From contig JAXLNO010001097.1 of assembly GCA_038087875.1 (NCBI GenBank), forward strand, positions 62,001 through 126,000: 64,000 bases of DNA, given 5' to 3'. A program made the position numbers and the translations under genes. The notes under the pieces are model-generated. The model made no database searches and was not told the DNA's origin. It worked only from the letters and a program-made list of their open reading frames with translations. Position 1 is the stretch's first letter. The number at the start of each line of letters is the position of its first letter. This stretch comes from Malacoraja senta. Taxonomy: Eukaryota. Shown piece by piece: positions 10,653-63,516 of this stretch.

Positions 10653-10780
10653 CCATCAATGCTCCCAAAGCTACAGGATGAAACTTGTGGAATAAATTCA
10701 AGTGCAACACCTGCTGTTACTTTAATTTCAGAAAATGCACTAAAGATATATACTTTTTTTTTGTCTATCTACTTATAGAA

Positions 10781-12270: not shown

Positions 12271-12707
12271 TGAAAAATTATCACAAATGCATCCACTATT
12301 TCTGGGGCTACTTCCTTAAGTACATTGAGCCAAATGTACATTGTACATTATATTGTACATTGAGCCAAATCACTCTATTTCCTTTTATTAAACAGATTGA
12401 CAATCTGCAGAAGGGATTAATCCATGTGGCTCTAGCTGCTTGTCTTAGGCTTATTAGAAATACTGGACAGGAGTATGAATGCAGTTTCGTAGGACAGTTT
12501 AATTTTAGCCCTAGCCCTTAACCTGCATTGCTTGATGAAAATATTTCAAATCTTGTCTCACAACGTAATTCTACAAATCCTGAGTTTTTTTTATTAGTTC
12601 AGGTTTGCAGTGGACAGCTTTCCATGCGTGGTTTTGTAACCTGCTCACTTGGTGTCATTTGAAACCCATTCCTGATTAAGTCAGAACTATCATGCCTCCT
12701 TGAAGAT

Positions 12708-15700
12708 GGACACAAAATGCTGGAGTAACTCAGCAGGACAGGTAGCATCTCCGGACGGAAGGAATGGGTGACGTTTCGGGTCGAGACCCTTCTTCAGACT
12801 GATGTCAAGGGAGAGGGAGATACATAGATAAGGAAGAGTAAGGTGTGAAAACAGGATCCTTATTTAGATAAATCGATGCAAAAACAAAAAGGTCAGACGA
12901 AATCTAAAACCAGTGAACTCTTACACACATATATGGAAAACACAAATATAACAGATGTATGGAGGATTGCAAACCCGACGGGAAGGGATTACTCGTTTTA
13001 TTCAATGGTGCATAAAACATATTCACGGATAGACTATTTTCTTGTGGATACAAAATTAATTTCGCAATCTCTGAATCCTAAATATCATATTAATGCGATC
13101 TCAGATCATTCTCCGTTAACTTTTGTTCTAAAACTAGAAGGAATGTCTATGAATAAACCGTTCTGGAGGTTTAACTCACAAATTTTAAAAGACCCTCAAG
13201 GGAGTATCTATCTAAAAAACAGATGGATCTATTTTTTGAGTTAAATGATACACCAGAGATATCCCCCACGTTATTATGGGAATCCTTCAAAGCATTTATA
13301 AGAGGAGTCATTATTTCATTTCAAGCTTATCAAAATAAAAAGAATAAGAATGAACAAAGACACTTAGAAGATCAAATAAAACAGTTAGATATAGATAATG
13401 CTAAAGACCCAACTATGGATAAACATAATAAAATACTACTACTGAAATTTCAGTTAAATAAATTACTGTCAGAGAAAGTTATAACATTATTTCAAATCAC
13501 AAAACAAGAACACTTCGAATTCGGGGACAAACCCCACAAACTTCTAGCACGACAACTTAAAAAACGGGAAAAAGAGAATGCAATATTAAAGATTAAATCA
13601 GATAGAGGGGAAGTATTAACACTACCCAAGGATATTAATAAAAGATTTGCTCAATTTTACCAGAATCTATACACATCTAAAACGTCAATAGACAATAATA
13701 AAATCTCAGAATTTTTAGATAATTGTAATCTACCACAATTAGAACGCAGGGAACAAGAGGAACTGGGAGCACAAATTACTTCTAAGGAGATAGAAGACAC
13801 AATAAAAACACTAAAAAATGGAAAAACACCAGGACCAGACGGATTCAGTAATGAATTTTATAAATCTTTTTATGATATAGTTACTCCACGATTACAAAAA
13901 ATGTATACATATGCTTATAAAGAGCAAAACCTACCTGAAACACTAGCGGAATCAACGATCATATTAATACTTAAAAAAGATAAAAATATAGAAGAACCAG
14001 GATCATATAGAGCTATTGCTTTGTTAAATACGGATCAGAAAATAATAGCAAAAACATTAGCCAATAGATTAAGCAAGTATGTTAGTAGACTAATACATGA
14101 GGATCAAACAGGATTTATACCTAAGAGACACTCATTTAATAATTTGAGACGTTTGCTTAACATAATGCATTCACATAAATCTGATGACCAAGAGTTAGCT
14201 ATCATCTCACGGGACGCAGAAAAAGCGTTTGATCAAGTAGAATGGGACTATATGATCAAAGTATTGCAAAAATTCCAATTGGGAGAAAACTTTATTGCAT
14301 GGATAAAACTACTATATAACAAACCTACGGCTAGAATACTAACTAATAATATATTATCTTCAAAATTCGAATTATCTAGGGGCAACAGACAAGGATGTTC
14401 ACTATCACCGCTGTTATTTGCTTTGGTAATTGAACCCCTTGCTGAAAAAATAAGAACACACTCGAATATTCACGGTTATAACACAAAATATTCAAACAAC
14501 AAACTATCCCTATATGCTGATGATGTACTACTGTACATCACAAAACCACAAATTAGTATACCAAATATATTAAACTTAATTGAGGACTTTGGATCCTTTT
14601 CAGGATATAGAATAAATTGGAACAAAAGTGAAATTATGTCGATTAAACCAAAAGACTCAACACATCTCAGGAAATTCCCTTTTAAAATAGCTATGGAAAA
14701 ATTCAAATATTTAGGAATTGAGATTACTAGAAATTACCATGATATGTTTAAAGCTAATTATAATCCCCTACTTAAGAAATTAAATAATCTGATTAAATTT
14801 TGGAAAACACTTCCGATGTCCTTAATAGGTAGGATAAATGCTATAAAAATGATTTTCTTGCCACAAATCCTTTACCTATTTCAATCAATACCTATATATC
14901 TCCCAAAAAAGTTTTTCAAAAAACTGGACTCAGACATTACAAATTTTATATGGGATTACAAATCCCACAGAATACAAAGAACACACCTTAACAAACGAAA
15001 AGAGTTGGGGGGTCTAGCGCTCCCTAACTTTATGTATTATAACTGGGCAGTAAATATTAAAAATATGATTCACCTGCTGGACAATTCTGCCCAGCAGGTG
15101 GACTGGATTATAATGGAAAAAGGGGATTGCTCCCCGAATAATATAGGAGCGATTATTCTCTCTCCAATAAATTTGAATAATAAAAATTATAATAAAAATC
15201 CAATTATATATAGCACTATTAGAACATGGAAGCAAATAAAACAGAATCTAAAATTAAGAAACCTATCTCTCTTAATACCAATAGTCAATAACCCATCGTT
15301 TAAACCTTCAATCATAGATAAAGCATTTATACAATGGGAAAGAATGGGAATTAAAACGCTCGAAGATCTGTATGAATTAGAAAAATTACTATCATTCCAA
15401 CAACTACAACTGAAATATAATTTGAAAAATAATCAATATTTTAAATATCTACAAATCTGTGACTATTTGAAAACACACACAAAAGATTATTATAATATGC
15501 CTTCCGACTTACTAGATGAAGCAATGAAGACAAAGGCGGAATCAGTTAATTTAATATCATACTTATATAATATCATCTTAAATATAGAAATACCCACAAC
15601 AGATGGAATTAGAAGAGATTGGGAACAAGATCTAGGTATAAAAATTTCAAAAGAGAGTTGGGATAATCATTTATTACAGGTGCATAAATGCTCGATCAAC

Positions 15701-16572
15701 GTACGACATACGCTTATCCAATTTAAAACATTACATAGATTATATTATTCAAAAACCAAACTAAATAAAATCTTTCCTAACGTCTCACCAATCTGTGATA
15801 AATGTATATGTCAAGAAGCTACCATAGCACATTCTTTTGTTTTTTGTACAAAAATCCAAAAATTCTGGTTTGAAATATTTGATATTTTTTCAAAATTAAT
15901 CAAAATAAAACTGGTACCAAAACCAGAATGGATTATTTTTGGAATATCGGAAGGTATTCCTGAATTAAACGTGTATCAGAAGAATTTACTCAATTATGGG
16001 CTAATAATGGGAAAAAAGCTTATACTTAAATTCTGGAAAAATGCGCCCACACCAACAATAAAAATGTGGACATCAAATATGTTGGAAACATTACATCTGG
16101 AAGAGATGAGATTCCTCCTAGTAGGCAAAGTAGATCAATTTCAAAAGACGTGGTCTACGTTTTTGGACCTATTACAAGCATGAGGTGCAATAGTAATTTA
16201 GAAAAACAAATAAATAAATAAAAGGTATCTGGACCTGGTAATGGGAGGTAAAATAAAAACAGACTTGGTTGGTAGTTCCTTCTCTATGAAGTATGGTATA
16301 AGAATTATAATAGAGCGATTGTTCCTTCTTTCTTTCTCTTTTTTTTTCTAGGGTCTATTTTCTAACTTTACTTCCTTCTCTAACTTCTTTTCTAAGGGGC
16401 TTTCTTTTCCCAACACTCTTTTGCACTTCACAACCTTTGTGCACTTTCTTCACTTTTCTTACTTCTTTCTTTTTCTTTCTTAAAGTTTAAAAAAGTGAAG
16501 CGGTACAAAAAATGTATTAATATATACGTGTTGTACATTACTGTAATCTACCGTACTTCTAAAAAATAAAAA

Positions 16573-16865: not shown

Positions 16866-17039
16866 TCAGTTGTCCTCAAGATGATGTACTCCCAAACTGT
16901 TGATGTGTCATTACGCCCAGGATTTTGACTCGTCAGAAATGGTGATATATTTACAAGTTTGCCTGCAAGGGTGACTTAGAGCTTTGTCTTGTCCCTCAGA
17001 TTTCTGTTCCAATGAAGTTCAACTTGAGAAAGTGAATAG

Positions 17040-17535
17040 ACAGTGGTTCATCAGTAGGGTTGCTGCCTTACAGCACCAGAGACTCGGGTTCAATCCTAAC
17101 TATGGATGCTGTCTATACTGAGTTTGTTCGTTCATGCTGTGACCACGGGGATTTTCTCCCACATTCCAAAGATGAGCAGACTTGTTCATCAGTTCATAAG
17201 TCATCGGAGCAGAATCAGGCCATTTGGCCCATCGAGTCTACTCCGCTATTCAATTATGGCTGATATATCTTTCCCTCTCAACCCCATTCTCCTGCCTTCT
17301 CCAATAACCCTTGACATCCTTACTAGTGAAAAATCTGTCAATCTCCACCTTAAAATTACCTAATCTGTGGCAATGAATTCCACAGATTCTCCATCTTCTG
17401 ACTAAATAAATTCCTCTTCATCTCCTTTCTAGAGATACATTATTTTATTCTGAAGCTATGCCATCTGGCCCTAGACACTCCCACTAATGGAAACATCCTC
17501 TCCGTATCCACTCACTTAAGGCCATTCAGTATTTG
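17040..17535. mobile_element. V-SINE 5' fragment (+) and CR1 3' end (-)
   Basis: Similar to other copies in the window. Confidence 0.6.
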
Positions 17536-17619
17536 GTAAGTTTCAATTTATAGTAGATGATGGAAATCTGTCCTGCTTTGCTGGTGTCCCATGGAGCTGA
17601 TAGACCTAATTTGAATCTG

Positions 17620-18280
17620 CCCTCATTACAATGTACGGTACTTTAATGAGGTACATGTACTGAGGTACAGTGAAATTCATTTTTGTATACAGTTCAGTAC
17701 GTATCACTATACATCAGATAAGCATCTCAGATACATTACAAATGTTATGCAGTAGAACACAGAGACGGTATACAGAGTCGCCAGTTTGGCACCATTTTCA
17801 AGTCCCAGCCTTTGTAAGTGCAGGGATCTTGATCTGACCATGAAGGTCTGTTGTCCTGGCCAAGTGTAGCTGTTGATTTCCTCTGCCTCTGCTCCACTGC
17901 TGTTGACGGCGTCCGGTACACGTGCTCGACCTTTTCGAGCGGCGCCCTGCCCAGCCGTGCCCCAGGCTGCTGCAGGGCCTCCAGCGGCCCACTCCACCAT
18001 TCAGACGGTGACTCCCTCCTCCTGCGGTCTGCTTACCGACCGTCCAGGTGGGTTCCTGTGGGTCCTTGATCCATGGCACAGGTCCTCCGTCATTGGTGGG
18101 CAAGACCCCGGTCCCCGGGGGATGGGCTGGGCCTACCGGGCAGGTCCCTGGTCTGTGGCGGGCAGGCTGGGCCGACCAGGGAGATCCCTGGTCTGCGGCG
18201 GGCGGGCGGGCTGGGCCTACCAGGCAAGTCCCCGGTCCCCGGCCTACAGTGCGGGTCCCGGGATACATTTGCAGGTTTGA
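17620..18280 (-). mobile_element. GC-rich repeat-derived segment with short internal repeats (probable non-autonomous LINE derivative)
   Basis: Recurring GGGCTGGGCCTACC...GTCCCTGGTCTG units at ~18120-18240. No credible ORF. Family not identified. Confidence 0.3.
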
Positions 18281-23883: not shown

Positions 23884-24124
23884 NNNNNNNNNNNNNNNNN
23901 NNNNNNNNNNNNNNNNNNNNNNNNNNNNNNNNNNNNNNNNNNNNNNNNNNNNNNNNNNNNNNNNNNNNNNNNNNNNNNNNNNNNNNNNNNNNNNNNNNNN
24001 NNNNNNNNNNNNNNNNNNNNNNNNNNNNNNNNNNNNNNNNNNNNNNNNNNNNNNNNNNNNNNNNNNNNNNNNNNNNNNNNNNNNNNGCGACAGAGAGACA
24101 GTGAGAGAGAGAGAGAGACAGAGA

Positions 24125-24157
<33 letters not shown>

Positions 24158-24306
24158 TGAGATAGAGAGAGGGANNNNNNNNNNNNNNNNNNNNNNNNNN
24201 NNNNNNNNNNNNNNNNNNNNNNNNNNNNNNNNNNNNNNNNNNNNNNNNNNNNNNNNNNNNNNNNNNNNNNNNNNNNNNNNNNNNNNNNNNNNNNNNNNNN
24301 NNNNNN
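23884..24306. other. Two assembly gaps (N 23884-24086 and 24175-24306) around a (GA)n microsatellite
   Basis: Visible directly in the sequence. Confidence 0.99.
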
Positions 24307-24777: not shown

Positions 24778-26341
24778 GGTTTAGGAGCCGTTGCTGTGGA
24801 CGGAGAGACGGGGACGTGAGCGGCCATTGAGGGCGGCCAGGGTGCAGATGAGCCCCTCCCCCCCACCCCCCATCTGCTCGGTGTGCTTCGAGGGGCTGCG
24901 CTTTGATGGAGGACCACATGAGGGGGCACAACAAGGAGAAGCGTTATGAGTGCGACGTGTGTGGCAAGGCCTGGCAGTACCCGAGCCGGCTGGAGATCCA
25001 CCGGCGGGTTCACACGGGAGAACGCCCCTTCGACTGCTCCGACTGCGGCAAGAGCTTCAAGTCGCCGCCGGAACTGAAGATGCACAGGCGCCTGCACACC
25101 GGGGAACGACCCTACACCTGCAGCGACTGCGGCAAGGTCTTCACCCGCTCCAGCAACCTGCTGTCCCACCAGCGCACCTACACTGGCGAGCGCCCCTACA
25201 CCTGCAGCGACTGCGGCAAGGGCTTCACCCGCTCCAGCAACCTGCTGTCCCACCAGCGCTCCCACACTGGCGAGCACCCCTATACCTGCGCCCAGTGCGG
25301 TAAGGGCTTCAACTCCTCCAGCAACCTGCTGTCCCACCAGCGCTCCCACACAGGCGAGCGCCCCTACACCTGTACCCAGTGCGGCAAAGGCTTCACCCAC
25401 TCCAGCATCCTGCTGGTGCACCAACGCACCCACACCGGCGAGCGTCCCTACACCTGCGCCCAGTGTGGCAAGGGCTTCACTCACTCCAGAAGCCTGCAGG
25501 TGCACCAGCGCACCCACACCGGCGAGCGCCCCCTACACCTGTACCCAGTGCGGCAAGGGCTTCATCCAGTCTGGCAACCTGCTGTCCCACCAGCGCACCC
25601 ACACCGGCGAGCGCCCCTACACCTGTACCCAGTGCGGCAAGGGCTTCACCCGCTCCTGCACCCTGCTGTCCCACCAGTGCACCCACACCGGCGAGCGCCC
25701 CTACACCTGCGCCCAGTGCGGCAAGGGCTTCACCCAGTCCGGTCACCTGCTGTTCCATCAGCGCACCCACACTGGTGAGCGCCCCTACACCTGCACCCAG
25801 TGCGGCAAGGGCTTCACCCGCTCCACCTATCATCTGTCCCACCAGCGGGTGCACGCCGGCGATGGTCCCATCCCCAGCCCGGTGTGTGGAGAGCGCTTTG
25901 CCATGGCCTCCCACCCCCTGTCTTACCAGCGCGTGCACAAAAGTGGCCAGCCCTACGACTGCCCGTACTGCGGTGAGGAGTTTGACATCTCGCGGGGGTT
26001 GCGGCAGCACCAGCGGACCCACGCCGGCGAGCAGCTGCTCCCACTGTAACAAGAGAGCACGGGGGCTGTGGGAGCACCAGCGGATACACACCGGAGAGAC
26101 ACCCTATGTGTGCACTGAGTGTGGCAAGGGTTTCACCAGCATGTCCAGCCTGTGGCAGCACCGGCGTACCCACAGCGGTGAGCGTCCCTTCCCCTGCCCG
26201 TCCTGTGGAAAGGGCTTCACCCGACTTGACCACCTGCTGGAGCACCGGCGAGTCCACACCGGTCAGCACCCCTTCACCTACCCGCTCTGTGGCAATGCCT
26301 TTGCCCGCTCCTCCAGCCTGCTTGCACACCGTTACTTTTAA
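24778..26341 (+). pseudogene. Multi-finger C2H2 zinc-finger exon (~17 fingers, several degenerate) with frameshifts
   Basis: Acceptor CCCCTCCTGCAG| ends at 24777. Tandem CxxC...HxxxH fingers with TGERPY linkers lie in three frames (24903..25530, ~25532..26049, ~26050..26341). Extra C in GAGCGCCCCCTAC at ~25527-25531. Confidence 0.85.
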
Positions 26342-47748: not shown

Positions 47749-47800
47749 ATGCTTCTTTTTACCTTACTGAACACTTACGGTGTGGCCACTGTCTCCTCTG
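47749..47800 (+). CDS. MHC class I-like exon 1, signal peptide (MLLFTLLNTYGVATVSS)
   Basis: ATG at 47749, 17 codons plus G, donor GTAAGC at 47801. G+AT makes Asp1 of alpha1. Confidence 0.75.
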
Positions 47801-48039
47801 GTAAGCAATACTGCTTCAACCTGTGAACTTTGAGGAAACAACAAAACTGATTATATTTACTGTTGCACAGTGCCTGTGTTTGCCCTGGGTTCATTGTCTT
47901 GGATGTATTAATTGAATGATTGAATTGAATGTATTAATAATTTTGGGTAACGGTCTTTCCTTAGTTGTAAAGGCTCCTGTGGGAAGTTATATATACTATG
48001 GTTACCTTGGCAATCCATTGAACAGAAGAACTGAATACA

Positions 48040-50170
48040 TGTAAATAATGAACATAGAACATAGTACAATACAGCACAGGAGCAGGTCCTTCAGTCCTTC
48101 AGTCTGAAGAAGGGTCTCGACCCGAAACGTCACCCGTTCCTTTTCTCCAGAGATGCTGCCTGACCCGCTGTTACCTCAGCATTTTGTCTACCTTCGACCC
48201 ACAATGTCTGTGCCGAACAAACTAAACTAATCTCCTCTACCTGTATGTGATCTGTATCCGGCCATTCCCTGCCTATCTATGTACCTATCTAAAAGCCTCT
48301 GAAATGTAACTGTTATATCTGCCACCATCACCACAACCACCACTGGCAGCGCGTTACAGATGTCCACCACCCTCCACATAAAACAACTTGCTCCGCTCAT
48401 CTCCTTTGAACATTGCTTCTCCAACCTTAAAGTGATGTTCTCTGGTCTTCAACATTTCCACCCTGGGAAAAAGGTTCTGGCTGTCCACTCTGTCTGTGCC
48501 TCTCACCATGTTGTGCACTTTCATCAGGTCTCCCTTCAACCTCCAGTATACAAGAGAAAACAATCCATGTTTGTCCAATCTGTCCTTGCACTAATGCCTC
48601 AGACAGAATTCAGGTGATGTGCACTTTCAATAAAGAAGTGACTTCTGCATTAGTAGGTGTTCCACCTCTCCAAGATTTCCTCAGCTGGTGTTAGACACCC
48701 ACATGATGGTAAAATTCAGCCTGCATTAAATGACCAATCAATGTTGTGTTAATGTTGTTGCCATCTTGTTGTTTGTTGCATGCTTCCTGTCCTGCAGACC
48801 CTATCCATTACCCCATCACCACTTCCCCAGAAGACGATAATGAGATTTAAGAAGCTTGAGGATAGGCACGTGGATATGCAGGGAATTGAGGGATATGAAT
48901 CATCTACAAGCATGAAGAGTTTAGTTGAACTTGACATCATGTTCGGCACAGACATTGTGGCCGAACTCCAGCCCATTACACCCTTAATGAACAAAAATCT
49001 ATCAATCTCAATCTGGAAATTTTCAAGTGGGCAAGATGTTCAACAGATTACAGAATCGAGAACCAGAGGACATAGGTTTAAATTGAGGGGGGAAAGATTG
49101 AATGGGAATCTGATGAGCAATTTCTTCCCACACAATGGTACCTTTCTAACTATTCTGACATTCATCAAGGCTTGGAGATTACAAACCTACTCGTCCTGAA
49201 AGTTTCATCCCATTGTTATCAAATGAAAGTAAATATAATGGTGTTAAAGAAGGAACTGCAGATGCTGGAAAATCGAAGGTACACAAAAATGCTGGAGAAA
49301 CTCAGCGGGTGCAGCAGCATCTATGGAGCAAAGGAAATAGGCAACGTTTCGGGCCGAAACCATATAATGGTGATGGCCATGTTGAAATAATAACATATAA
49401 AACAAAAATCCTTGGCTGTGGAGTGTTTTGCGAAGCCACATGGATTTTATCGTTACTGTATTCCACTCTTAGCCGTCTTATGTTTCTCCTGGTACCACTG
49501 AAACAGACACTTCTAACTCTGCCCTCGGGGCCCCTTCTCACTTCACTTAAACACATGAACTTTGACACTGTCTGGTGTGCTGCATGTAATCTTTATCACA
49601 GAACAAATACTGCTTATGCATGTGGAAACAAGAAACTGCACATGCTGGTTAATACACATAAAATACTGGAGTAATTCAGCAGGTCAGGCAGTATGTCTGG
49701 AGAACATGGTTAGGTGATGTTTCAGTTGACACAAGTGTAGGAAGGAAGTGCAGATGTGTAAGAAGGAACTGCAGAAGCTGATTTAAACCGAAGATAGACA
49801 ATAAAGCTGGAGTAACTCAGCGGCACAGGCAGCATCCCTAGAGAGAAGGTATGGGTGACGTTTCGGGTCGAGACCCTTCTTCTGACTGCTGATGCAGATG
49901 CTGGTTTACACCGAAGATAGATACAAAAGGCTGGAGTAACTCAGCAAGTCAGGCAGCATCGCTGGAGAAAAGGAATAGGTGGAGTTTCAGGTCAAGACAC
50001 TGCATCAGACAGAGTCGGGGGTGCATATATTTCATTGTACTTTGTCATATCTCTCGGTTCTCTGTCCCCTGACTCTCATTCTGAAGAAGGGTCTCGACAC
50101 GAAACGTCACCTTTTCCTTTTCTCCGGAGATGCTGCCTGACCCACTGAGTTACTCCAGTATTTTGTGTCG
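48040..50170. mobile_element. Intron 1 repeat cluster: Penelope-derived fold-backs and CR1 fragments
   Basis: Hammerhead-like cores at 48104-48131, 49857-49884 (-) and 50081-50108. CR1 3' UTR remnants at ~48200-48590. Confidence 0.6.
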
Positions 50171-51234
50171 AGTTTCAATTTAGGCCCTGTTTATCTCAGT
50201 CTCCACCACCCCCCCCCCCCCCCATCCCTATGAGCTGTGTTGCAGCTGCCTATGAGGACCTGGACTCAATCCTGATCTCTTACAACCTGGCTTTTTTTTC
50301 CCCCTGCAAACGTGTGTTTGCTATGGTTATTCCAGTTTCCCCGCACGTCCCCAAAATGCCGGGCTGAAAGGTAAATTGGCCAGTGTGAATTGGTCATGCA
50401 TATGTATTAGAATTGGTGGAGGGGATGAGGGAGGTGTTAATGGGAGATTGGCAAATATTAAAAGGGTTAGCGTACCACAGGTATAAATAGGTGTTTGATG
50501 GTCACCACGAACTTGGTGGGCTAAAGGGCCTTTTATGTGCTGTACCCAGTGGACATAAGTTTAAGATGAGGGGGGAATGATTTAATAGGAACCTGAGGCA
50601 TAGCATTGTTACACAAAGGGTGGTGGGTGTACTGAATGAACTGCCGGAGAAGGTAGTTCAGGCGCGTACTATCACGACATTTAAGAATCATTTAATCAGG
50701 TACATGGATAGGATAGGCTTATAAGGATATGGGCCTCAGTCAGCTGTAGAGCCCACATCAATGGATATTTCTCAGGTGGAGATTAACAGATTCTTGATCA
50801 GTATGGGTTTCAAGGGTTATGGGGTGCAGGCAGGAGAATGTGGTTGATAGGGAGAGATAGCTCAGCCATGATTGAATGGCCGATGGGCTGAATGGCCTAA
50901 TTATTCTCCTAGAACTTATGTACTGATGAAATACAGGCAGTGTAGATGAGGCATGTTGGTTGGTGTGGCAAGTTGAGCCATAGGCCCTGATTCCCTGCTG
51001 TATGACTCTTTGACTTTACCTCTCTATGATTCTATAAAGTCTCCTTGACATTGTCCAGTTTCTTAATATAATAAAATATTCTTCAAATTTTGGAATATTG
51101 TAACTAGTAGAACCTATCGACATGATAGACAATAATAGATCTTTGAAGATGGGAAACAATCCAGTAGGATCATTCAATACCTCGACCATAATTGGTGGAG
51201 TAGGTATCAGAGCCCATCATGCCAACTCTTGAAG

Positions 51235-51545
51235 AAGGCTCAGTGGTGCAGCGGTAGACTTACTCGATTACAGCACCATAGACCCAGGTTGGATCCTGAT
51301 TACGGATGCTGTCTGTACGGAGTTTGTCCATTCTCCCCATTACCGTGTGGGTTTTTCCCGAGATGTTCGGATTCTTCCCACATTCCAAAGACGTATAGGT
51401 TTGTAGGTTAATTGGCTTGGTCTAGAATGTAAATTGTCCCTAGTGTGTGTAGGATAGTGTTATTGTGTGGGGGTTGCTGGTCAGTGTGGACTCGCACGAA
51501 GGGCCTGTTTCCATGCTGTATCTCTAAGCTAAAAACTAAACTAAA
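51235..51545 (+). mobile_element. V-SINE
   Basis: tRNA-like head, V domain and (CTAAA)n tail. Confidence 0.7.
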
Positions 51546-51735
51546 GGCTCCTGACCCAAATTGTCACCTGATCATTGATGCTGCCTGCCCCACTGAGTTC
51601 ATCCAGCACTTGCATCTGCAGGTCCTTGTGACTCCCTTATTCAAAGTTATTGTATTGTTATCAGTTTTAGCATTAATAACTTAGTTATTTTCAGTGAATG
51701 ATACAATCATACTTATTTTTGTTTATGCATTGCAG

Positions 51736-51996
51736 ATTTACACCATCTTGCATTTTACTACCTGTTGAACCATGGATTGAATGAGCTGCCTGAGTACAGT
51801 ATGGTAGCAATGCTGGATGACGTCCAGATAGCATATTTTGACAGCACACTAGAGCGGGCTGTTCCCAGACAGCGATGGATGGCCCAGTCTTTCCCGCAGG
51901 ATCACTGGGATTCAATGGCCATCACAGTTGCAGGTTTTCATGGGATTGTCAGAGGAAATGCTGAGATAGTCTACCAACAGCAACATGGTATCTCGA
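51736..51996 (+). CDS. MHC class I-like exon 2, alpha1 domain
   Basis: DLHHLAFYYLLNHGLNELPEYSMVAMLDDVQIAYFDSTLERAVPRQRWMAQSFPQDHWDSMAITVAGFHGIVRGNAEIVYQQQHGIS. Acceptor TTGCAG, donor GTAAGT. Confidence 0.92.
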
Positions 51997-53740
51997 GTAA
52001 GTGTCGTGAGCGGACCTGGGGTAGAGACCCAGTGATGACACAGATGGATTTTGTTTTAGTTTTATTGTTGACACATGATTCTCTGATACACTTTTTTTGC
52101 GTTAGTCAATCACATCAAAGAAAACTATTCATAAATACAATCAAACCAAACTCGTACAATAGGTAGAGCAAAGAGTGCAGAATGTAGTTCTCAGCATTGT
52201 AATGTACCAGTGCCAGAGACAAAGTCCAGTGTCTACAATGGGGTTGAGGTGAACCCTAGCATAAGGGAGGACTGTTCAGAAACCTGATAACATAGGGGAG
52301 GAAACAGTTACTGAGTCTGGTGGTGCACGCTTTAATGCTTACGTACCTTCTGCAGGAAGAAGGAGTGACCAGAACGGGATGAATCTTTGATTATGTTGTC
52401 TGCTTTCCTGAACCAGTTGAAATACAGATGGATTCACTGGTGGGGAATCATGTTTGTGTGATCGACTGTGCTACATCTCCACCTCTCTGCCATTTCCAGC
52501 GGTCTTGGGCAGAACTCTTTCCAAACTAAGTTGTGATGCAACCTGTCAGTATGCTTTCTATGGCACATTTGTAGAAGTTTGTAAGAGTCATTGGAGATGC
52601 CGCATTTCCTTAGTCTCCTGAGGCAGTAGGGGAACCAGAAACTCTCAACCTTTTTCACTTCAGCACCATTGATGCTGTTTCAGACATTTACTCCATCACA
52701 TTTTGATAGAGACACGGCCCATCGTCTATATTTAATGTGTCCTAACTGCTGAACACACAGTCATAACAGTTGGCTGGTGATAGTCTCTTTATGGGTTAAG
52801 CATTTGATATTCAACACCAGTAATAAGTGGATGGATTGGATCATCTGTTTTGTTGGGCTGGAATGAGGGAGAAACCATTAGTTTATTTATAGCCTGATCA
52901 TCTAGAGATGGGATCTTGATTTAAGCTGGTTGATGGTGACTATGAGGTATTCCCTCAGTAATAATATTGTGTTAATCCAGCATCCCCTCAATATTGGCAA
53001 CAATCCTCAGAGGGTGTAGCAATCCCACACAGTGCAACAGCCTTGATGTACTTCCCATCTGCATTGCCTTAACCTTCAGACTGACCTGTTGGCTCTGTAG
53101 CATTGCCCATCTGACAATGCACTTCTTCCTCTGTTCGTTATGTACGACAGTGCAGAATCTGAGTTCCACCCTTCTGACACAGCAGAACTCCTTTAGTGTT
53201 ACATCCGCAACAGTAAAGCTCCCCCCCATAACACTTGAGGTTAGTCCATGCCCTCAGTATATAGACCATGGGTCATTGAGTTACACATCATGGAAACCGG
53301 CCCTTCTGCTCACTGAATCCACATTGATCATCCATTGTGCTAAGATGGAGTCACAGCAAACTGCAGATGCTGCCAATCTGAATTTAAAACAAACAGGAGG
53401 AACTCAACGAGTCAGGCAGCATGCTGTGGAAAAATGGACAGAAAACATATGAGACCAGGACCATTTAGAGTGATGGGGTAGAGTGGAGAAAGCTGGAAAA
53501 GAAAAGTAGTCTGTGTACGATAGTGTTAATATGCGGGGACCACTGGTCGGTGCGGACTCGGTGGGCCGAAGGGCCTGTTTCCGCGCTGTATCTCTGAGCT
53601 AAACCTGCTCCTGTGCTGTACAGCTCCATGTTGTGTTCTGTTATGCCTGTTTGTACCATGCTGAGAACTGATTTGTAAATTGCCTCTCCCTTCCATCCAC
53701 TCTCCCCAACACAAATCCTCCACCCCTACCTCAGCCCCAG

Positions 53741-54016
53741 CTGTTTGCTTTGTGCAGGGTTTCTGCGGCTGTGAAGTGGACAGTGACAATTCCACTGATG
53801 GGTTTGTCAGACTGGGTTATGATGGGGAGGATGCCTGTGCTTTTGACAAGGACAGAATGCGCTGGATTGCACTACGTCCAGATTTCCAGATGCTAGCAGA
53901 TCGGTGGAACGTCAACACCTTCATGAACAAGTATTTTAAAGATCTCCTGGAGAAGGACTGTGTGAAGTGGCTGCGGATATATCTGGAGTGTGGACAAGAA
54001 GCACTACAGAGGAGAG
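53741..54016 (+). CDS. MHC class I-like exon 3, alpha2 domain
   Basis: TVCFVQGFCGCEV...GYDGED...RW...RW...DCVKWLRIYLECGQEALQRR. 276 nt, canonical C101-C164 pair, acceptor CCCCAG, donor GTACAC. Confidence 0.92.
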
Positions 54017-54114
54017 GTACACGACGTAGGCACTCTGACTGATGGGCCAGAGGATATCCTCTGGATAGATCAGGTGGGAAATATCATGCACTTCAGGCTG
54101 TCACTTGAGTAATT

Positions 54115-54408
54115 ATTTAGTTTAGTTTAGAGATACAGCGCGGAAACCCACCGAGACCGCACCGAGCAGCCATGCCCGCACACTAACACTATCCTACACA
54201 CACTAGGGACAATTTGCATTTATACCAATCCAATTAACCTACAAATTTGTACGTCTTTCGAGTGTGAGGGGAAACCGAAGATCTCGGATAAAACCCACGC
54301 AGGTCACAGGGAGAACGTACAAACTGTGTAAAGACAAGCACCCGTAGTTAGTAACAAACCCAGGTCTCTGGCGCTGTAAGGCAGTAGCTCGACCGCTTCG
54401 CCACCCTG
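54115..54408 (-). mobile_element. V-SINE
   Basis: Same family, with the tail (TTTAG)n on + at 54115-54130. Confidence 0.75.
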
Positions 54409-55220
54409 TTCTACAACGTGGGTATCAGTAAATTGTCTGGCAACGTGCCTCTTAGATGGAACCAGTGGGTAGGAAGTGCAAGTGAAAGATAAATATTGTA
54501 CCAGTGTCCTTTATCCACAGTCATATAGATATTCAGGAAATGGAGGAATATGTATCTTGGTCTTATGTTTAGCACCGACCTTGTGGCCTGAAGGGTCTGT
54601 TGCTGAACTGATCAGAAACCCAATCAGATTCTCTATTTGCCTCTATTACTCCTTGGGATGGTGACATTCAATTTCCAACAGTTCTCTATTTGAAGAACTT
54701 CTTCCTCCCATTCCCTCTTGGAATATTTAGTGTTATTATTCAGCAGAGATTCATGAACAGGTAGAAGCAATCATGTCTACAGTATCAATCCCAATGGTGA
54801 GTTATACTCCTCCATTGGGCCTGCATTCCCCTTTCATCTGTGCTGTCAGTTAAAGTCTGGAGCTAAGATAAGGAGCATGTCAGTGATATTAAAGCTAAAT
54901 GTTTTGTTGTTTTGCCAGAAATGCAAAATGAAAAGAGAAAAGGCTGTAAACTTTGTGCAAGATAGAACTGCAGATGATGGTTTACACTGAAGATAGAAGA
55001 TGTTGGTGTAACTCAGTGGGTCAGATAGCATCTCTGGGCATTCCTTCTCTCCAGAATGCTGCCTGACCTGCTGAGTTATTCCAGCATTTTGGGTCTAGGC
55101 TGAAAACTTAGTTCAGCCAGAGAAAAAACTCTGATTGGGAAAGTGGTGAGTTGCAGTGATCTTACAATTGAAGGCTTTTGTTCATGTCTTCACTGATTCT
55201 GACTCTTCTTACACTTGCAG

Positions 55221-55493
55221 AAACCCCTGAGGTGTTTATTGGGATTAAACGTGATGGGTCGCAATCACTGAGACTCTCCTGCCTTGTCACAGGCTTCTAG
55301 CCACGGGCCATCGATGTAACGTGGCTGAGAGATGGTGAGGGGGTCCATGAGTCTGAATCCAGTGATCTGTTGCCCAATTGGGATGGGACTTACCAGCTGA
55401 AGAATACAATTCAACTGAATAGAGAAGATGTGGCAAAATTCTCCTGTTACATCGAACATGCAACTCTGCTGCAGGGAGTCAATGTTCCACAGG
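55221..55493 (+). CDS. MHC class I-like exon 4, alpha3 Ig-C1 domain, with in-frame TAG at 55298-55300
   Basis: ETPEVFIGIKRDGSQSLRLSCLVTGF*PRAIDVTWLRDGE...LLPNWDGTYQL...FSCYIEHATL. Acceptor TTGCAG, donor GTAAGT. Absent from the ORF track. Confidence 0.93.
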
Positions 55494-55594
55494 GTAAGTG
55501 GCAAGTCAATGAGGCTGATCACTTGAGACCATAAACCTCCTGGACTGAGATAACAGTCTCAACTCACACTCTTAACTAAGCTGTGGATTTAGAC

Positions 55595-56222
55595 TTTAGG
55601 CTTTAGAGATATGCTGCAGATACAGGCCCCTCAGCTCACTGAGTCCTCGCTGAATAGTGATCAACCCATACATTTACACTAACCTACACAGTACGGACAA
55701 TTTACAATTTTACCTAAGCCAAGTAACCTACAAACCTGTATGTCTTTGTAGTGTGGGAGGAAACCCACGCAGTCACAGGGAGAACATACAATGTCCTTGC
55801 AGACAGCACCTGTAGTCAGGATCAAACCCAGGTCTCTGGTGCAGTAAGGCAGCAGCTCTACCGCTACGCCACTGTGCCACCCATTATTAATTTGTGGTTA
55901 TCTAATTGCTCATAATTATTGATAGTCAATGGAATGTGGTTTTAGTTTAAGAGATACAGCGCAGAAACCGGCCCTTCAGCCCACCAAGTCTGCGTCAACC
56001 AGCGATCCCTGCACACTTACATTATCTTACTTATTAGGGGACAATTTACAATTATACCAAGCCAATTAACCTACAAACCTGTATGTCTTTGGACTGAGTG
56101 AGGAAACCGGAGATCCAGGCAAAACCCACGCAAGTCCCGGGGAGAAGGTACAAAACTCTGTACAGACGGGACCCGTAGTCAGAATTGAACCGGGTCTCTG
56201 GCGCTGTAAGGCAGCAGTTCCA
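55595..56222 (-). mobile_element. Two tandem V-SINEs
   Basis: Copies at ~55595-55882 and ~55940-56222. Confidence 0.7.
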
Positions 56223-56687
56223 CCGAGTGGGCAAAGCAGAGCCAAATGGAATACAGTGTAGCAAGTGTCTGGTTTTACATTTTGGCAGTCAGAATAAAGA
56301 CATAGACTATTTTCTAAATGGGGAGAGAATTGAGAAACCTGAGCTACAAAGTGGGAGTACTAGTGCAGGATTCCCAAATAGTTCATTTGCAGATTGAGTC
56401 AGTGGTAAGTAAGGCAAATGCAATGCCAGCATTCATTTCGGGGGGCGTAGAATATAAAAACAATGATATAATGCTGAGGATTTATCGGGCACTGGTGAAG
56501 ACACATTTGGAATATTGTGAGCAGTTTTGGGCTCCATATTAGAAAGGATGTGCTGGCTTTGGAGAGGGTCGAGAGGATGTATGTCCTGGGGATGATTGAT
56601 TTAACGTATGAGGAGTGTTTGAAGTCTCTGTGCCTGTGCTCATGGGATTTAGAAGGATGAGGTGGGAATCTCATTGAAACCTACCAG

Positions 56688-59600
56688 CAGGGCCGGATTT
56701 AGATGAAGAGAGGCCCTAAGCTGTTCCACTTGTGAGGCCCCCCCCCCAATCCCCCACCCCCACGACCAGAGGAAGATGGTCCACCATATTGACACCGATT
56801 TGCAGCCGAGCGTGGCCAATGAGATAAGGGGCTGGAAAGCTGGGCTTTATTTATTTATTTATTGCCACTGCTAGTGTCGAGTTATTGGCTTAAAACACTA
56901 TTATTCTGAAATGGAGGGCAAGGAAAATTACTGAAGTGTTGTTTAGAGACTACAGTGCGTTGTGACAGCATATGTAAGAAAGGCCTATGACAGTGTCAAA
57001 AATATTATACACCTTGCAGGGCTCTCACTTAATTTTTTTTCTCTGTTGTCAGCCGGGCAACCTTGGTAGCTTTTTAAGTTGCCAAATGACAGTTTAGGTG
57101 GTTATTTAAGATGGCTTGCATGACACGTGCGATAATGTGCTCGGACGACCAGTCAGAATTATGCTCAATGAAGCATTCACATATTATTTCTGCTTCAAAT
57201 AAAGCCACAAACTAAACATATTCACCAATCAGGACATGATATATACCACAATGACATGCAGCACAATTATAATACTGTATCTTAACTCTTTTTACACGTT
57301 GCAATGAATGCAATTTCTATTATTTCTTTCCACTTCCAAAAAAAAATGTGGTTGGATTATTCAGCGTATGATCAACCTCGGTGAGACCAAGTGCAGGCTT
57401 GGCGATTGCTTCGCACAACACCTCCACTCAGTTCGCAATAACCAACCTGATCTCCCGGTGGCTCAGCACTTCAACTCCCCCTCCCATTCCGAATCTGACC
57501 TTTCTGTCCTGGGCCTCCTCCATGGCCAGAGTGAGGCCCACCGCATATTGGAGGGGCAGCACCTCATATTTGCTTGGGTAGTTTACACCCCAGCGCTATG
57601 CACATAGGCTTCTCTAATTTCAGGTAGTCCTTGCTTTCTCCCTCCTTCCCCTCCCATTCCCAGCTCTCCCACAGCCTACTGTCTCCGTCTCTTCCTTTAT
57701 TTTTCATGTCATTCCCCCCCCCCCCGACATCAATCTGAAGAAGGGTCTCGACCCGAAACATCGTCTATTCCTTCGCTCCACAGGTGCTGCCTCACCCGCT
57801 GATTTTCTACAGCTTTTTTGTCTACCAATGGGATCCCACAACTGGCCACATCTTCCCATCTCCTCCCCTGTTGGCTTTCCATAGAGACCGCTCCCTCCGT
57901 AACTCCCTGGTCAATTCGTCCATTCCCACCCAAACCACCCCCTCTCCTGGCACTTTCCATTGCAACTGCAGGAAATGCTACACTTGGCGTTTTAATTAAG
58001 TTCAAGACAATGGGGCTGTACATTGGCCATAAGGTTGCTGCCTAAAAGTGCCAGAGACCTGGAATTGATCCTGAATATGGGTGTTGTCTGTTTGGAGTTT
58101 GCTCCTTTTCACTTTGATCGCATGGGTTTTCTTCGGGTGCTCTTGTTTCCTTCCACATTCCAAAGGTGTGCAGGAACCTATTTCAGAACCAACCCTAAAC
58201 GTAATATTTCCCTTTTGTCCAGAGATTCTGTCTGACCTGTTGAGTTACTCCAGCTTTGTGTGTCTATCTTCAGTTTAAACCAGCATCTGCAGTTCCTTCC
58301 TACACACACGATACTATACGATAGAACTTTATTAATCCCAGGAGGGAAATTGTGTGTGTGTGCGTGTGGGTATATATACTATGCACACACACACACACAC
58401 ATATATATATACAATACAATTACAATACAATTTTATTTGTCTTTTGGACAAATTTGTCATTTGGACCCCGTTGAGGTCCAAACGAAATGTCGTTTCTGCA
58501 GCCATACATTACAAAACGAAGAAGACCCAAGACACAACACAATTTACACATACATCCATCACAGCGCTGTGATGGAAGGCAAAAAAACGTATCTCTCCAC
58601 TGCACTCCCCCCCCCCACCCCCCCGATGTCAGAGTCAAAGTCAAAGCCCCCGGCGGGCGATGGTGATTATCCCGCGGCCATTAAAGCCACGCCGGTTAAT
58701 GCAGGGTCGCGCACCGCGTCTTGGTGTTAGAGCCCCGGCGCGCGCTCGCAAAGTCCAGCGGCCATTCCAAGCCGCGCGGGGCGGTGATGTAAAGCCCCCC
58801 TCCAGGTGCTCTTCAACCCCGCAACTCGGGCGGGAGAAGTCGCCGCTGCGGATGCCCCGAAAAGCGGTGTCCCACCAGGGGACCCACGGGCTTCCGGTGT
58901 TGCCGTCCGCCAGACCCGCGGTTGTAGCCTCCGAATCTCCGGGGGTCGGGTAGCAGCAGCGATTGTCTCCACCACAGCTATAAATATACACCGTTTTGTT
59001 TTCTCGTTTATAACATTGTTTACAGAGTACTATGTTTACATATTCTGTTGTGCTGCTGCAAGTAAGGATTTCATTGTTCTAACTGGGACGTGAGAGAATA
59101 AACTCTTGACTCTTGACTTACTTCGCTAATGTGTGGGAAAGAACTAGTGTACGGGTGATCAATAGTCGGCGTGGACTCGGAGGGCTGAAGGGCCTGTTTC
59201 CACGCTGTATCTTCAAATTAAGCTAAAGACACTAAAACCAGAGGGAGTCTAAAGAAGTGTTTCTACCCGAAACGTCACCCAATTTCTTCTATCCTGAGTT
59301 GCTGGCTGCTCCATGGAGTTCCCCCGCACAATTAAAGCATGGAATAGTCTTCACCCTACCATAGTTACCCAACCAGACGCAACTAAATTTAAGGTACCTC
59401 TTTTTTCCCCAAGAACCCTTTTTTGCTTAAGTCCAAGTCAAGAGTCAAGAGAGTTTTATTGTCATGTGTCCCAGATAGGACAATGAAATTCTTGCTTGCT
59501 GCAGCACAACATAATATGTGAACATAATACAGAACAGGAGATAAAAGTTCAGTGTGTTTATATACCATAGACCATATATATACACAATAAATAAACAGAT

Positions 59601-60203
59601 AAAATGCAATAGGCTGTTATTGTTCAGCCCTCTACCACCTCCAGTTTAAATTCCTTTTAGAATATTTATGGAGGATCAGGAAACCAGAAGCGAGAGTTAC
59701 TCCAGGGAGATACTCCTGATCCAGGGTCAGGGAGTGATTCTGTGTTAGTTTTCAGCGGTTGCGGCGAGGCAGCAATGGCGGCCAAATCTCCCACAATTCA
59801 AAGCGAGGGAGAAAGTGCCCAGCGCCGACCAGTTGCCGTGGCAGTGCGCATGCGCAGGGCGGCCGATGACGTGCGGGCTGTGGTTGTGCGCATGTGCAGG
59901 GGAGGACGTGCTGGCCGCAGCAGTGTGCATGTGCAAGGCGGCCGGCCGTGCTGGCGGATGAGGAGCGAGCGGAGAACGGAGACCCGGACACGGAGAGTGA
60001 CAGACGGAGATAGAGATAGAGAGGGGGGCCGCCCCGCCCAGAGTTGAACGGCTGGTGTCCTGCCTTGGCCGGAGGCCCCCTATATTTCAGGGCCCCAGGC
60101 TTCAGCCTATGAAGCCTAGTGGTAAATCCGGCTCTGCGAGCCCCTCCTAGATCTCCAGGCCCTAAACTGAAGCTTGTCCATCTTATATGTAACTCCGGCC
60201 CTG
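56688..60203. mobile_element. Non-autonomous hAT-type composite element with cargo repeats
   Basis: 10-bp TIR CAGGGCCGGA and 8-bp TSD CCTACCAG (56680-56687, 60204-60211). No transposase seen. Confidence 0.85.
57364..57985 (+). mobile_element. Neptune-type Penelope-like remnant (GIY-YIG C-half, 3' UTR, hammerhead-like core, Cys-rich linker)
   Basis: LGETKCRLGDCFAQHLHSVRNNQPDLPVAQHFNSPSH..., then the core at 57735-57762, then RDRSLRNSLV...GTFHCNCRKCYT. Confidence 0.75.
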
Positions 60204-61345
60204 CCTACCAGATAATGAAATGCCTGGTTAGTTGATGGGAAAGGAAGTTTTCAGTAATGGGAGAGTCTAGCACAGCCTCACAATAAAAATACCTACCTTC
60301 AATATGGAGATGAGGAGGAATCTCTTTAGTCACAGGGTGGTGAATCTGTGGAATTCATTGATACAAACAGCTGTGTGGGTCAAGTCATTGCATATTTTTC
60401 AAGCAGAGATTGATAGGTTCTTGATGAGTACGGGTGACAAAGGTTACAGGGAGAAGGCTAGAGAATGGGATTTAGCGGTAAAAAATAGATCTGCTATGAC
60501 TGAATGGTGGAGTAGACTCAATGGACTTGAAAGGCATAATTCCGCTCCAATATCTTATGGTCAAAATTATTCTTATGTCACCCTTAACTCACCCATCCAA
60601 ATGTAGGAACAGTGGAAGCAAGATAGGCTGATCCTGGACAAGGTCTCTTATCTTCTTCCTTGGGCATCTAGCTAATTTTCTGATAGTAGCTAGTTACACA
60701 AAAGACCAATAGTGGTGCCATATTATCAGGCTGAAGTAGCAGCACCTGTTCTGTAGCTGACTTATTTGTTCCAGACAAGACCTCTGCAAAGATCTTCACA
60801 CCAGGGCCAAGCTGACATGGTTAAGATTGCTGGTCAGTACAAATAGACAGTAGTGTTAATGTCTGTGTGTGCCTATGTGTGTGTGTGTGGGCTCATGTGT
60901 GTGAGACAGTGAGGGGGAGAGAGAGAGAAAGAGAGAGCATGTGTATGTGAGAAAATTAAACTCAGATATCATTGAAATATCAGCAAAGATTAAAACCTTT
61001 GAAGTTTTATCAACTATAAATGGGTTCACTTTTATTTGCTATAATAACAATCAACATAAGAAAATGGCCTTGTTGACCTCTACACTGTAAATAGTCATAT
61101 ATTTCTGACGTACTTGATTCTTTAAATTCTTAATTAAATGCTGCTGATAAAATCTCAATACCTCAATGCTAATATGAACTTAATGATTTTTCATTGATCA
61201 TTTTAAGCACATCCATCCTCTGTATAAATACTTAAATCTAAAACGTTATTACTTTTTAATTAGATATGAACAGTGCTACTTTAATTTAGATAATAAAATC
61301 ATTACAATGTTGTTATTGATCACTAAATGTTTAAAATGCACTATA

Positions 61346-63282
61346 CAGTGGCTTGCAAAAGTTTTCATACCCCTTGAACTTTTCCACATTTTGTCACGTT
61401 ACAACCACAAACGTAAATGTATTTTATTGGGATTTTATGTGATAGACCAACACAAAGTGGTGCATAATTGTGAAGTGGAAGGAAAATTATACATGGTTTT
61501 CAAATTTTGTTACAAATAAAAAACTGAAAAGTGTCGCGTGCAAAAGTATTCAGCCCCCCTGAGTCAATACTTTGTAAAACCACCTTTCGCTGCAATTACA
61601 GCTTTGCACATCTAGAGACTGAAATTTTTGCCCATTCTTCTTTGCAAAATAGCTCAAGCTCAGTCAGATTGGATGGAGAGCATCTGTGAACAGCAATTTT
61701 CAAGTCTTGCCAGAGATTCTCAATTGGATTTAGGTCTGGACTTTGACTGGGCCATTCTAACACATGAATACGCTTTGATCTAAACCATTCCATTGTAGCT
61801 CTGGCTGTATGTTTAGGGTCGTTGTCCTGCTGGAAGGTGAACTTCCGCCCCGGTCTCAAGTCTTTTGCAGACTCTAACAGGTTTTCTTCCAAGATTGCCC
61901 TGTATTTGGCTCCATCCATCTTCCCCCATCAACTCTGACCAGCTTCCCTGTCCCTGCTGAAGAAAAGCATCCCCACAGCATAATGCTGCCACCACCATGT
62001 TTCACAGTGGGGATGGTGTGTTCAGGGTGATGTGCAGTGTTAGGTTTCCGCCACACATAGCGTTTTGCATTTAGGCCAAAAACTTCAATTTTGGTCTCAT
62101 CTGACCAGAGCACCTTCCTCCACATGTTTGCTGTGTCCCCCACATGGCTTGTGGCAAACTGCAAACGGGACTTCTTATGGGCTTTTTTCAACAATGGCTT
62201 TCTTCTTGCCACTCTTCCATAAAGGCCCGATTTGTGGAGTGCACGACTAATAGTTTTCCTGTGGACAGATTCTCCCACCTGAGCTGTGGATCTCTGCAGC
62301 TCCTGCAGAGTTACCATGGGCCTCTTGGCTGCTTCTCTGATCAATGCTCTCCTTGCCCAGCCTGTCAGTTTAGGTGGACGGCCATGTCTTGGTAGGTTTG
62401 CAGTTGTGCCATACTCTTTCCATTTTCGGATGATGGATTGAACAGTGCTCCGTGAGATGTTCAAAGCTTGGGATATTTATTTATAACCTAACCCTGTTTT
62501 AAACTTCTCCACAACTTTATCCCTGACCTGTCTGGTGTGTTCCTTTGGCTTCATGATGTTGTTTGTTCACTAATGTTCTCTAACAAACCTCTGAGGCCTT
62601 CACAGAACAGCTGTATTTATACTGAGATTAGATTAATAATAATAATAATAATAATGGATGGGATTTATATAGCGCCTTTCTAATACTCGGCGCTTTACAT
62701 CGCATTATTCATTCACTCCTCAGTCACACTCGGTGGTGGTGAGCTACTTCTGTAGCCACAGCTGCCCTGGGGCAGACTGACGGAAGCGTGGCTGCTAATC
62801 TGCGCCTACGGCCCCTCCGACCACCACCAATCACTCACACACATTCACACGCAGGCAAAGGTGGGTGAAGTGTCTTGCCCAAGGACACAACGACAGTATG
62901 CACTCCAAGCGGGATTCGAACCGGCTACCTTCCGGTTGCCAGCCGAACACTTAGCCCATTGCGCCATCTGTCGTCCCGAGATTACACACAAGTGGACTCT
63001 ATTTACTAATAAGGTGACTTCTGAAGGCAATTGGTTGCACTGGATTTTATTTAGGGGTATCAGAGTAAAGGGGGCTGAATATTTTCGCACGCGACACTTT
63101 TCAGTTTTTTATTTGTAAAAAAATTTGAAAACCATGTATAATTTTCCTTCCACTTCACAATTATGTGCCACTTTATGTTGGTCTATCACATAAAATCCCA
63201 ATAAAATACATTTACGCTTGTGGTTGTAACGTGACAAAATGTGGAAAAGTTCAAGGGGTATGAATACTTTTGCAAGCCACTG
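61346..63282 (-). mobile_element. Tc1 (DD34E, IR/DR-type) transposon, defective
   Basis: TIRs of ~214 bp (CAGTGGCTTGCAAAAG...) with ~8 mismatches, TA TSD at 61344-61345 and 63283-63284. WSDET...QQDND-x-IE gives D-34-E. ATG at 62554, stop at 62477-62479, frameshift near 61920, small C-terminal deletion near 61595. Confidence 0.96.
62636..62978 (-). mobile_element. tRNA-derived CORE-type SINE with an L2-like tail, inserted in the Tc1
   Basis: A box TGGCGCAATGG, B box GGTTCGAATCC, CORE-like GTGTCCTTGGGCAAGACACTT, tail AAAGGCGCTATATAAATCCCATCC(ATT)n. AGATTA duplication at 62630-62635 and 62979-62984. Confidence 0.85.
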
Positions 63283-63295
63283 TATATGCCAACAG

Positions 63296-63516
63296 AGAAG
63301 GCAGTGAAAGAAGATATGAAGATTAGGATCGTGACTGGAGCTGTAATTGTTCCTCTCATTCTCCTGGGGATCATCCTTGGAATTGGTTGCTGGAAGAAGA
63401 GGAAAAAGAGAAAACCTTTCAATGAACAGGTACCAGCTGACAACAGCAGAGACCAGGAGAGGACCATGAAGCACAATCAGCTTCCTTTGGGATGCAGAGG
63501 AGGTCTACCAGAATGA
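63296..63516 (+). CDS. MHC class I-like exon 5, connecting peptide, TM and cytoplasmic tail
   Basis: (E)KAVKEDMKIRIVTGAVIVPLILLGIILGIGCW-KKRKKRK. Acceptor CCAACAG is in phase 1. The exon may instead end at the possible donor CAG|GTACCA (63429). Confidence 0.75.

Follow-up and report, generated by a model that had tools for sequence, protein, structure and literature searches.

A stretch of 64,000 nucleotides (nt) from Malacoraja senta (assembly GCA_038087875.1, contig JAXLNO010001097.1, positions 62,001 to 126,000 of the forward strand) is referred to below as the window, and all positions are given in its numbering unless a scaffold is named. [quoted passage not shown] In its alpha3 exon, an in-frame TAG (55298..55300, plus strand) replaces the tyrosine codon of the conserved GFYP motif. 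Through this single TAC-to-TAG change, translation would end at residue 223, out of 360, with neither the immunoglobulin (Ig) domain complete nor the membrane anchor made. The locus is unable to encode a full class I chain and is a pseudogene or a null allele.

Exon structure of the class I gene

The five exons of the gene are all of phase 1 and are bounded by canonical AG acceptors and GT donors. Exon 1 (47749..47800) provides the ATG and a 17-residue signal peptide and ends at the phase-1 donor GTAAGC; its leader peptide is identical to that of an intact paralogue found in Leucoraja erinacea (leader exon at L001:100-151, where L001 stands for scaffold JAMYXN010000384.1). Exon 2 (51736..51996) encodes the alpha1 domain, whose Pfam MHC_I match (1.4e-5) is under the Pfam gathering score, and exon 3 (53735..54016) encodes the alpha2 domain (MHC_I, 2e-16). 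Exon 4 (55221..55493) encodes the stop-interrupted alpha3 Ig C1-set domain (Pfam C1-set, 7e-9, a match that covers the part downstream of the TAG), and exon 5 (63296..63516) encodes a connecting peptide, a transmembrane (TM) helix called from a hydrophobic stretch in the translation, a basic stop-transfer sequence, and a cytoplasmic tail that ends at a TGA (63514-63516). Both Ig cysteines are present in alpha3, as is the C101-C164 pair in alpha2. With MHC_I domains in alpha1 and alpha2, a C1-set domain in alpha3, one domain per phase-1 exon, and both disulfides, the gene belongs to the MHC class I superfamily, and the frame over its spliced exons, which a functional gene would keep uninterrupted, is broken by the TAG.

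An earlier account of the locus, drawn from the letters of the window without database searches (the sequence-only reading), had five phase-1 exons splicing in frame. The exons, their AG/GT borders, their phase, and their domains stand; the open frame does not, and three borders were revised. The alpha3 exon ends at 55493 rather than at 55495. The alpha2 exon, which had been started at 53741, is preceded by tandem acceptors 6 nt apart (cag at 53732-53734 and cag at 53738-53740), both of which are in frame and which differ by the residues Pro-Ala. The upstream acceptor yields TPAV, which is also what the sawfish orthologue shows and what NCBI models for the skate paralogue. In batoid orthologues the sequence at this point is TPA[VI]FFVQG, and their models take the upstream acceptor; the Pro-Ala pair is absent from the shark orthologues. 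Because the batoid orthologues and the paralogue model agree on this reading, the alpha2 exon probably starts at 53735. Likewise, the TM exon probably begins at 63296 and not at 63305, which lies 9 nt downstream and is equally in frame, the former acceptor being homologous to that of the intact paralogue (EKAVKEDMKIR versus ERAAKDDIKIR). All alternative acceptors of the gene preserve the reading frame. We also considered an alternative donor inside the TM exon (cag/gta) and rejected it, since the GT is missing from the paralogue, which is read through there.

A premature stop confirmed by two runs

The spliced translation reads LVTGF-stop-PRAID where every relative has GFYP, the TAG being codon 223 of a precursor of length 360. 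Tyrosine occupies this position in 10/10 orthologues and in the paralogue, whose codon, TAC, is one C-to-G change away from the TAG of the window. By an established rule, a stop more than 50 to 55 nt upstream of the last exon junction exposes a message to nonsense-mediated decay; here the stop lies 193 nt upstream of that junction, and the message should therefore be a target of this pathway.

We aligned two public sequencing runs of the same organism (X1 and X2), the only ones found to contain the locus in full, to positions 51000-56000 of the window. The runs cover introns and exons evenly and hold no exon-exon joints, and they therefore behave as DNA. In neither run does an alternative letter reach 10% of depth at 55298-55300, and in both the stop lies inside a contig that matches the window exactly (55149-55529 in X1 and 55157-55347 in X2). 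The agreement of the two runs and their contigs on the TAG makes an assembly slip unlikely. Besides the stop, the window copy carries two replacements, F93C and L169R, at positions where 9/10 orthologues keep F and 9/10 keep L, respectively. Together with the reads, these argue against the alternative of a gene that is functional in the species, with the TAG due to faulty assembly or to a null allele confined to the sequenced animal. We regard that alternative as quite improbable, even though the rest of the gene (every splice site, both pairs of disulfide cysteines, the sequon, and the TM exon) is intact and damaging changes are not in excess on the window branch relative to the intact paralogue. 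The alternative also draws on a minor C>T variant at 53910 in the alpha2 exon (about 19% of the depth in X1 and about 32% in X2), which indicates that the locus has a second allele or a near-identical copy.

The age of the disabling change can be gauged from the coding differences between the two copies. The pairwise dN/dS between the window copy and the paralogue is 0.52, and when the changes are polarised on the sawfish sequence, the window branch has 7 nonsynonymous and 5 synonymous changes, against 10 and 5 on the intact branch. The window branch thus shows no long decay, and the stop arose recently.

Phylogenetic placement as the sister of UGA

When the alpha2 exon was searched exhaustively with HMMER, it matched, at 96% identity, a 359-residue protein of Leucoraja erinacea, XP_055486430.1, which is annotated as "MR1-like, partial." A search with this protein in turn retrieved one protein in each of 11 further elasmobranch species, comprising batoids (Pristis, Mobula, and Hypanus) and sharks (Pristiophorus, Heptranchias, Scyliorhinus torazame, Mustelus, Cetorhinus, Stegostoma, Hemiscyllium, and Chiloscyllium), along with a second, shorter Pristiophorus model, at 53 to 72% identity to XP_055486430.1. 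The orthologues are 58 to 78% identical to the window gene, whereas the next class I proteins in the XP_055486430.1 search reach only 33 to 36%. Across the 12 elasmobranch species, including the skate, the NCBI label of this orthogroup is "MR1-like." A separate search seeded with the skate UGA protein gave 15 usable UGA members, which are 38 to 44% identical to the window gene.

Our main tree, a careful IQ-TREE analysis of 57 rows under LG+C20, places the window gene with the skate paralogue (100/100), within a group of batoid members (99/95), within a 12-row lineage (100/100) made up of the window gene, the second skate copy, and one member each from ten other shark and ray species. The 15 UGA rows form a clade of their own (100/100), and the two clades are joined with support of 99/92. 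A quick tree of 117 rows agrees with the careful one; a large shark multigene clade is separate from the lineage in these trees, which hold no UFA, UDA, UCA, or true MR1 sequences. The lineage and UGA co-occur in at least nine species, and both clades span sharks and batoids; the duplication that separated them therefore predates the shark-ray split.

The best PDB match of the alpha1 exon is 9CH4_A (E, 2.4e-22), and the second is 8GM8_A (2.6e-12); their entries are titled "shark nonclassical MHC class I, UGA" and "shark nonclassical MHC class I, UFA," respectively. A full-length match of a Pristiophorus protein to 9CH4 (E, 1e-138) marks the UGA lineage among the proteins that we fetched. The AF2 model of the paralogue (mean pLDDT, 86) matches the MHC fold at Z above 25. 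From the clade support and the shared groove residues detailed below, the window gene belongs to the UGA-sister orthogroup.

Membership in UGA and in UFA was considered and rejected. The window gene is not itself a UGA gene, since it is sister to the 15-row UGA clade at the modest identity given above. Nor is it UFA: identity to 8GM8 is 32% in the structural alignment, and the 60 best PDB matches of the zebra-shark orthologue, P0157, do not include it. The alpha1 motifs of 8GM8 occur in none of the fetched proteins, and the UGA-seeded search gave UGA-clade proteins only. Neither UDA, which retains eight of nine anchors, nor UEA, which is multicopy and is not known from rays, would seem to fit the lineage on these traits. 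The gene does not cluster inside the classical lineage; clustering there was among the results that the sequence-only reading had named as overturning it. The novelty that it had proposed is nonetheless largely lost, as the gene nests with full support in an orthogroup already annotated by NCBI, whose sawfish member has been mapped as MHC-Ib. The lineage is in this sense largely a described one, though our literature search found no published name for it. A full-text literature search on the PDB codes 9CH4 and 8GM8 gave chance matches only, and searches for a paper on UFA or UGA turned up just a 2023 MBE article and a 2025 review. We conclude that the window gene is a pseudogene copy within an already annotated lineage.

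An apolar groove without peptide anchors

Residues were called from an alignment of the gene and its relatives with classical-type class I proteins of lizard, turtle, lungfish, and cod. The positions that hold peptide termini read F7, H59, Q84, L143, R146, W147, L159, and Y171, so that two of the eight anchors are retained (W147 and Y171) along with the conservative K146R; the state is the same in all orthologues. We therefore rejected a classical class I gene (a UAA-type peptide presenter), for which the set would be Y7, Y59, Y/R84, T143, K146, W147, Y159, and Y171. These calls, with A123 (Y123A), bear out in full the anchor losses and retentions listed in the sequence-only reading (Y7F, Y59H, Y/R84Q, Y123A, T143L, and Y159L lost; W147, Y171, and K146R kept). 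They likewise bear out its observation of H86 in place of the usual glycan site and of a single N-x-S/T sequon in the whole gene, the N-S-T in alpha2, as well as each of its apolar groove residues (M63, V67, F70, I73, V74, V81, V114, L116, F152, and L159). On these grounds (two of eight anchors and an apolar groove), its identification of a non-classical class I gene was correct.

To summarize the groove, we used 42 positions in HLA-A2 numbering, according to our own mapping. The window gene has 25/42 strictly apolar residues, 4/42 charged or His, and a mean Kyte-Doolittle hydropathy of 0.94, compared to -0.55 to 0.78 in the comparators, UGA included. Over the lineage, 23 to 26 of the positions are strictly apolar and 4 or 5 are charged or His, and mean hydropathy ranges from 0.78 to 1.18; UGA members range from -0.06 to 0.50, and other shark class I and classical-type rows range from -0.55 to 0.78. 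All 42 groove residues are identical between the window gene and the intact skate paralogue, and Gly69, Gly76, Gly97, and Ala123 are invariant in the lineage. Among the unpaired cysteines (HLA-A2 numbering), Cys99 is invariant in the lineage (Phe in UGA), Cys174 is present in most members, and Cys124 is confined to batoids.

The NCBI name suggests that the lineage might present small metabolites in the fashion of MR1. In keeping with the name, the best PDB sequence matches of alpha2 are MR1 chains (6e-17, versus about 1e-14 for classical class I), and MR1 structures rank high in Foldseek. However, MR1 forms a Schiff base with its ligands through Lys43, and the equivalent residue, Ala in the window gene, varies among A, T, I, and C in the lineage; moreover, alpha1 is far nearer UGA (2e-22) than MR1 (4e-6), and it is UGA that the lineage joins in a tree built without a true MR1 sequence. 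MR1-like presentation is therefore highly improbable.

Intact members of the orthogroup are predicted to be type I membrane proteins in which a signal peptide is followed by an alpha1/alpha2 groove, an Ig-like alpha3 domain, a TM helix, and a tail that is short and basic, and would reach the surface as beta2-microglobulin-associated molecules holding a conserved hydrophobic ligand. The groove lacks anchors for the ends of a peptide, and the apolar residues and glycines that line it are mostly the same across sharks and rays; such an anchor-less, little-changed apolar groove makes a conserved, lipid-like ligand likely. Most likely, by composition and by analogy with what is reported for UGA and UFA, intact members hold a hydrophobic, lipid-like ligand. 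The non-peptide and possibly lipid-binding character proposed in the sequence-only reading is thus a fair deduction from the apolar groove and the UGA kinship as far as the lineage is concerned; the window copy itself cannot make the protein.

The groove might instead be closed, with intact members binding no ligand and acting as receptors or ligands in the manner of HFE, FcRn, or the NKG2D ligands. The invariant Gly69, Gly76, and Gly97, held in common with UGA, could allow closer packing of the helices, and HFE, FcRn, and ZAG score nearly as high in the structural search as antigen-presenting molecules do. A closed groove would, on the other hand, have no need of 25 apolar residues; W147, Y171, and R146 are retained; and lipid carriage has been reported both for UGA, the sister lineage, and for UFA (PMC12562908). 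We consider a ligand-free function unlikely and favor a hydrophobic ligand in the intact members.

Several points weigh against our interpretation of the locus and its lineage. The runs that confirm the TAG may derive from the assembled individual, and a polymorphic null allele is compatible with them. Our run searches found no RNA runs that contain the locus, so that splicing and loss of expression are predictions only; a second search gave one possible RNA run, from another organism, with 23% of the alpha3 words. With regard to the groove, 23/42 positions are invariant among 11 relatives, and the excess over the rest of alpha1/alpha2 is not significant (P = 0.06). Its polarity was read from alignment positions, and the case for lipid binding draws on the composition of the sequence and on a personal communication, cited in a review, that concerns UGA and UFA and not this lineage.

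Genomic context and other copies

The intact paralogue in Leucoraja erinacea (on L001) has the same exon plan as the window gene, and splices to an uninterrupted frame. Its place is 42 kb upstream of a UGA gene that has the same orientation. Its protein is 91% identical to that of the window gene in the tree alignment and 87% identical by BLASTP, where the alignment spans a read-through insert of the annotated model. This model, XP_055486430.1, is labelled partial and reads through the alpha2 donor for 12 residues; the exon plan of the window gene, applied to the scaffold, gives a complete frame that includes the leader. Between the two copies, exons are 94.5 to 97.3% identical (97% in DNA for the alpha1 exon) and introns are 88 to 92% identical. 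These are therefore diverged duplicates and not one locus. A third copy, on JAMYXN010000412.1 (L002), is represented by a mis-modelled protein, XP_055486496.1, which has alpha2 and alpha3 only, joined to an unrelated N-terminal part. No leader or alpha1 exon was found within reach on that scaffold, and this is probably another, 5'-truncated, dead copy.

The sawfish orthologue is Pristis pectinata LOC127585976 (NC_067438.1, 13956125-13977896; the gene of protein P0151), which the supplement of Verissimo et al. (2023) labels "MHC-Ib." Mapping places three UGA-clade proteins on the same chromosome record, NC_067438.1, and TRIM39-like and U1 snRNA genes lie upstream in the region from 13.95 to 14.22 Mb. 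Placement directly upstream of a UGA gene holds for the skate paralogue and the sawfish; the window ends 484 bp past the TGA of the gene described here.

No other class I exons were found in the 64-kb window. The 47 kb upstream of the gene consists of mobile elements, among them two long open reading frames (ORFs) with RVT_1 domains (about 1e-40) at 13223-16183 on the plus strand and 6046-8325 on the minus strand. A 320-residue C2H2 zinc-finger ORF (25379-26341, plus strand) lies just past masked runs of N (23884-24086 and 24175-24306). A repeat family with 90 to 93% identity occurs at 10775-12323 of the window, at 17008-18094 and 27552-29037 of L001, and at 12274-13022 of L002; it sits inside or beside the paralogous skate genes and, in L002, between the alpha2 and alpha3 exons.

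Implications

Sharks and rays are the oldest animals possessing an MHC. CD1-like lipid presenters (UFA and UGA) have been reported from them, and such reports would trace lipid presentation back to the origin of adaptive immunity. The lineage described here is the closest relative of UGA and has an even greasier groove, and no published name was found for it; its intact members therefore merit study of their ligands and structure. The window locus itself adds little, being a dead duplicate; it does show that the gene is present in more than one copy in the skate and that a single recent nonsense change put at least one of them out of action. As a tentative and still doubtful extension, the UGA-sister clade might represent a third, unnamed lipid-presenting class I lineage of sharks and rays, whose groove would be the most apolar among the three and whose origin would antedate the separation of sharks and rays. 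Birth-and-death evolution would then, in skates only, have turned a gene that is elsewhere single-copy and monomorphic into a family of live and dead copies.

Comparison with known class I systems

The nearest counterparts of the window gene are the other members of its orthogroup, Pristis pectinata LOC127585976 and Leucoraja erinacea XP_055486430.1. They resemble it in exon plan, anchor-less apolar groove, N-S-T sequon, extra Cys99, and type of tail; they read through alpha3, whereas the window copy has the TAG along with F93C and L169R.

Among named lineages, Verissimo et al. (2023) and a 2025 review (PMC12562908) list UDA, UEA, UFA, and UGA; both sources call UFA and UGA CD1-like lipid binders on the basis of unpublished data and personal communication. 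UGA (PDB code 9CH4, released 2026-03-18) is the nearest solved relative and the best structural match of the paralogue model (Z, 26.7). It shares with the lineage an alpha1 helix of the form AGFHG..KG (with G69 and G76), the residues G97, A123, L159, L160, and Y171, and an alpha2 helix of the form MN.YFK.LLE.DC, and the two are genomic neighbors as well as sister clades (99/92). UGA differs in keeping Y7 and Y59, in having F143 and K146, and in having 6 to 8 charged groove residues, versus 4. The skate UGA tail ends in a DYQNI sorting motif, in contrast to the lineage, whose tail is without a YxxI/DYQNI motif. UFA (PDB code 8GM8, released 2024-11-27) is also non-classical, MHC-linked, and described as CD1-like in the literature, but is more distant from the paralogue model (32% identity; Z, 20.5).

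CD1 resembles the lineage in its apolar groove without peptide anchors and in its presumed monomorphic ligand, and among the cluster representatives of the structural search, chicken CD1-1 ranks second (Z, 25.1). It differs in having no detectable specific sequence kinship with the lineage, the one CD1b in the tree forming a very long branch outside the clade; unlike CD1, moreover, the lineage lacks a tyrosine sorting tail and is linked to the MHC.

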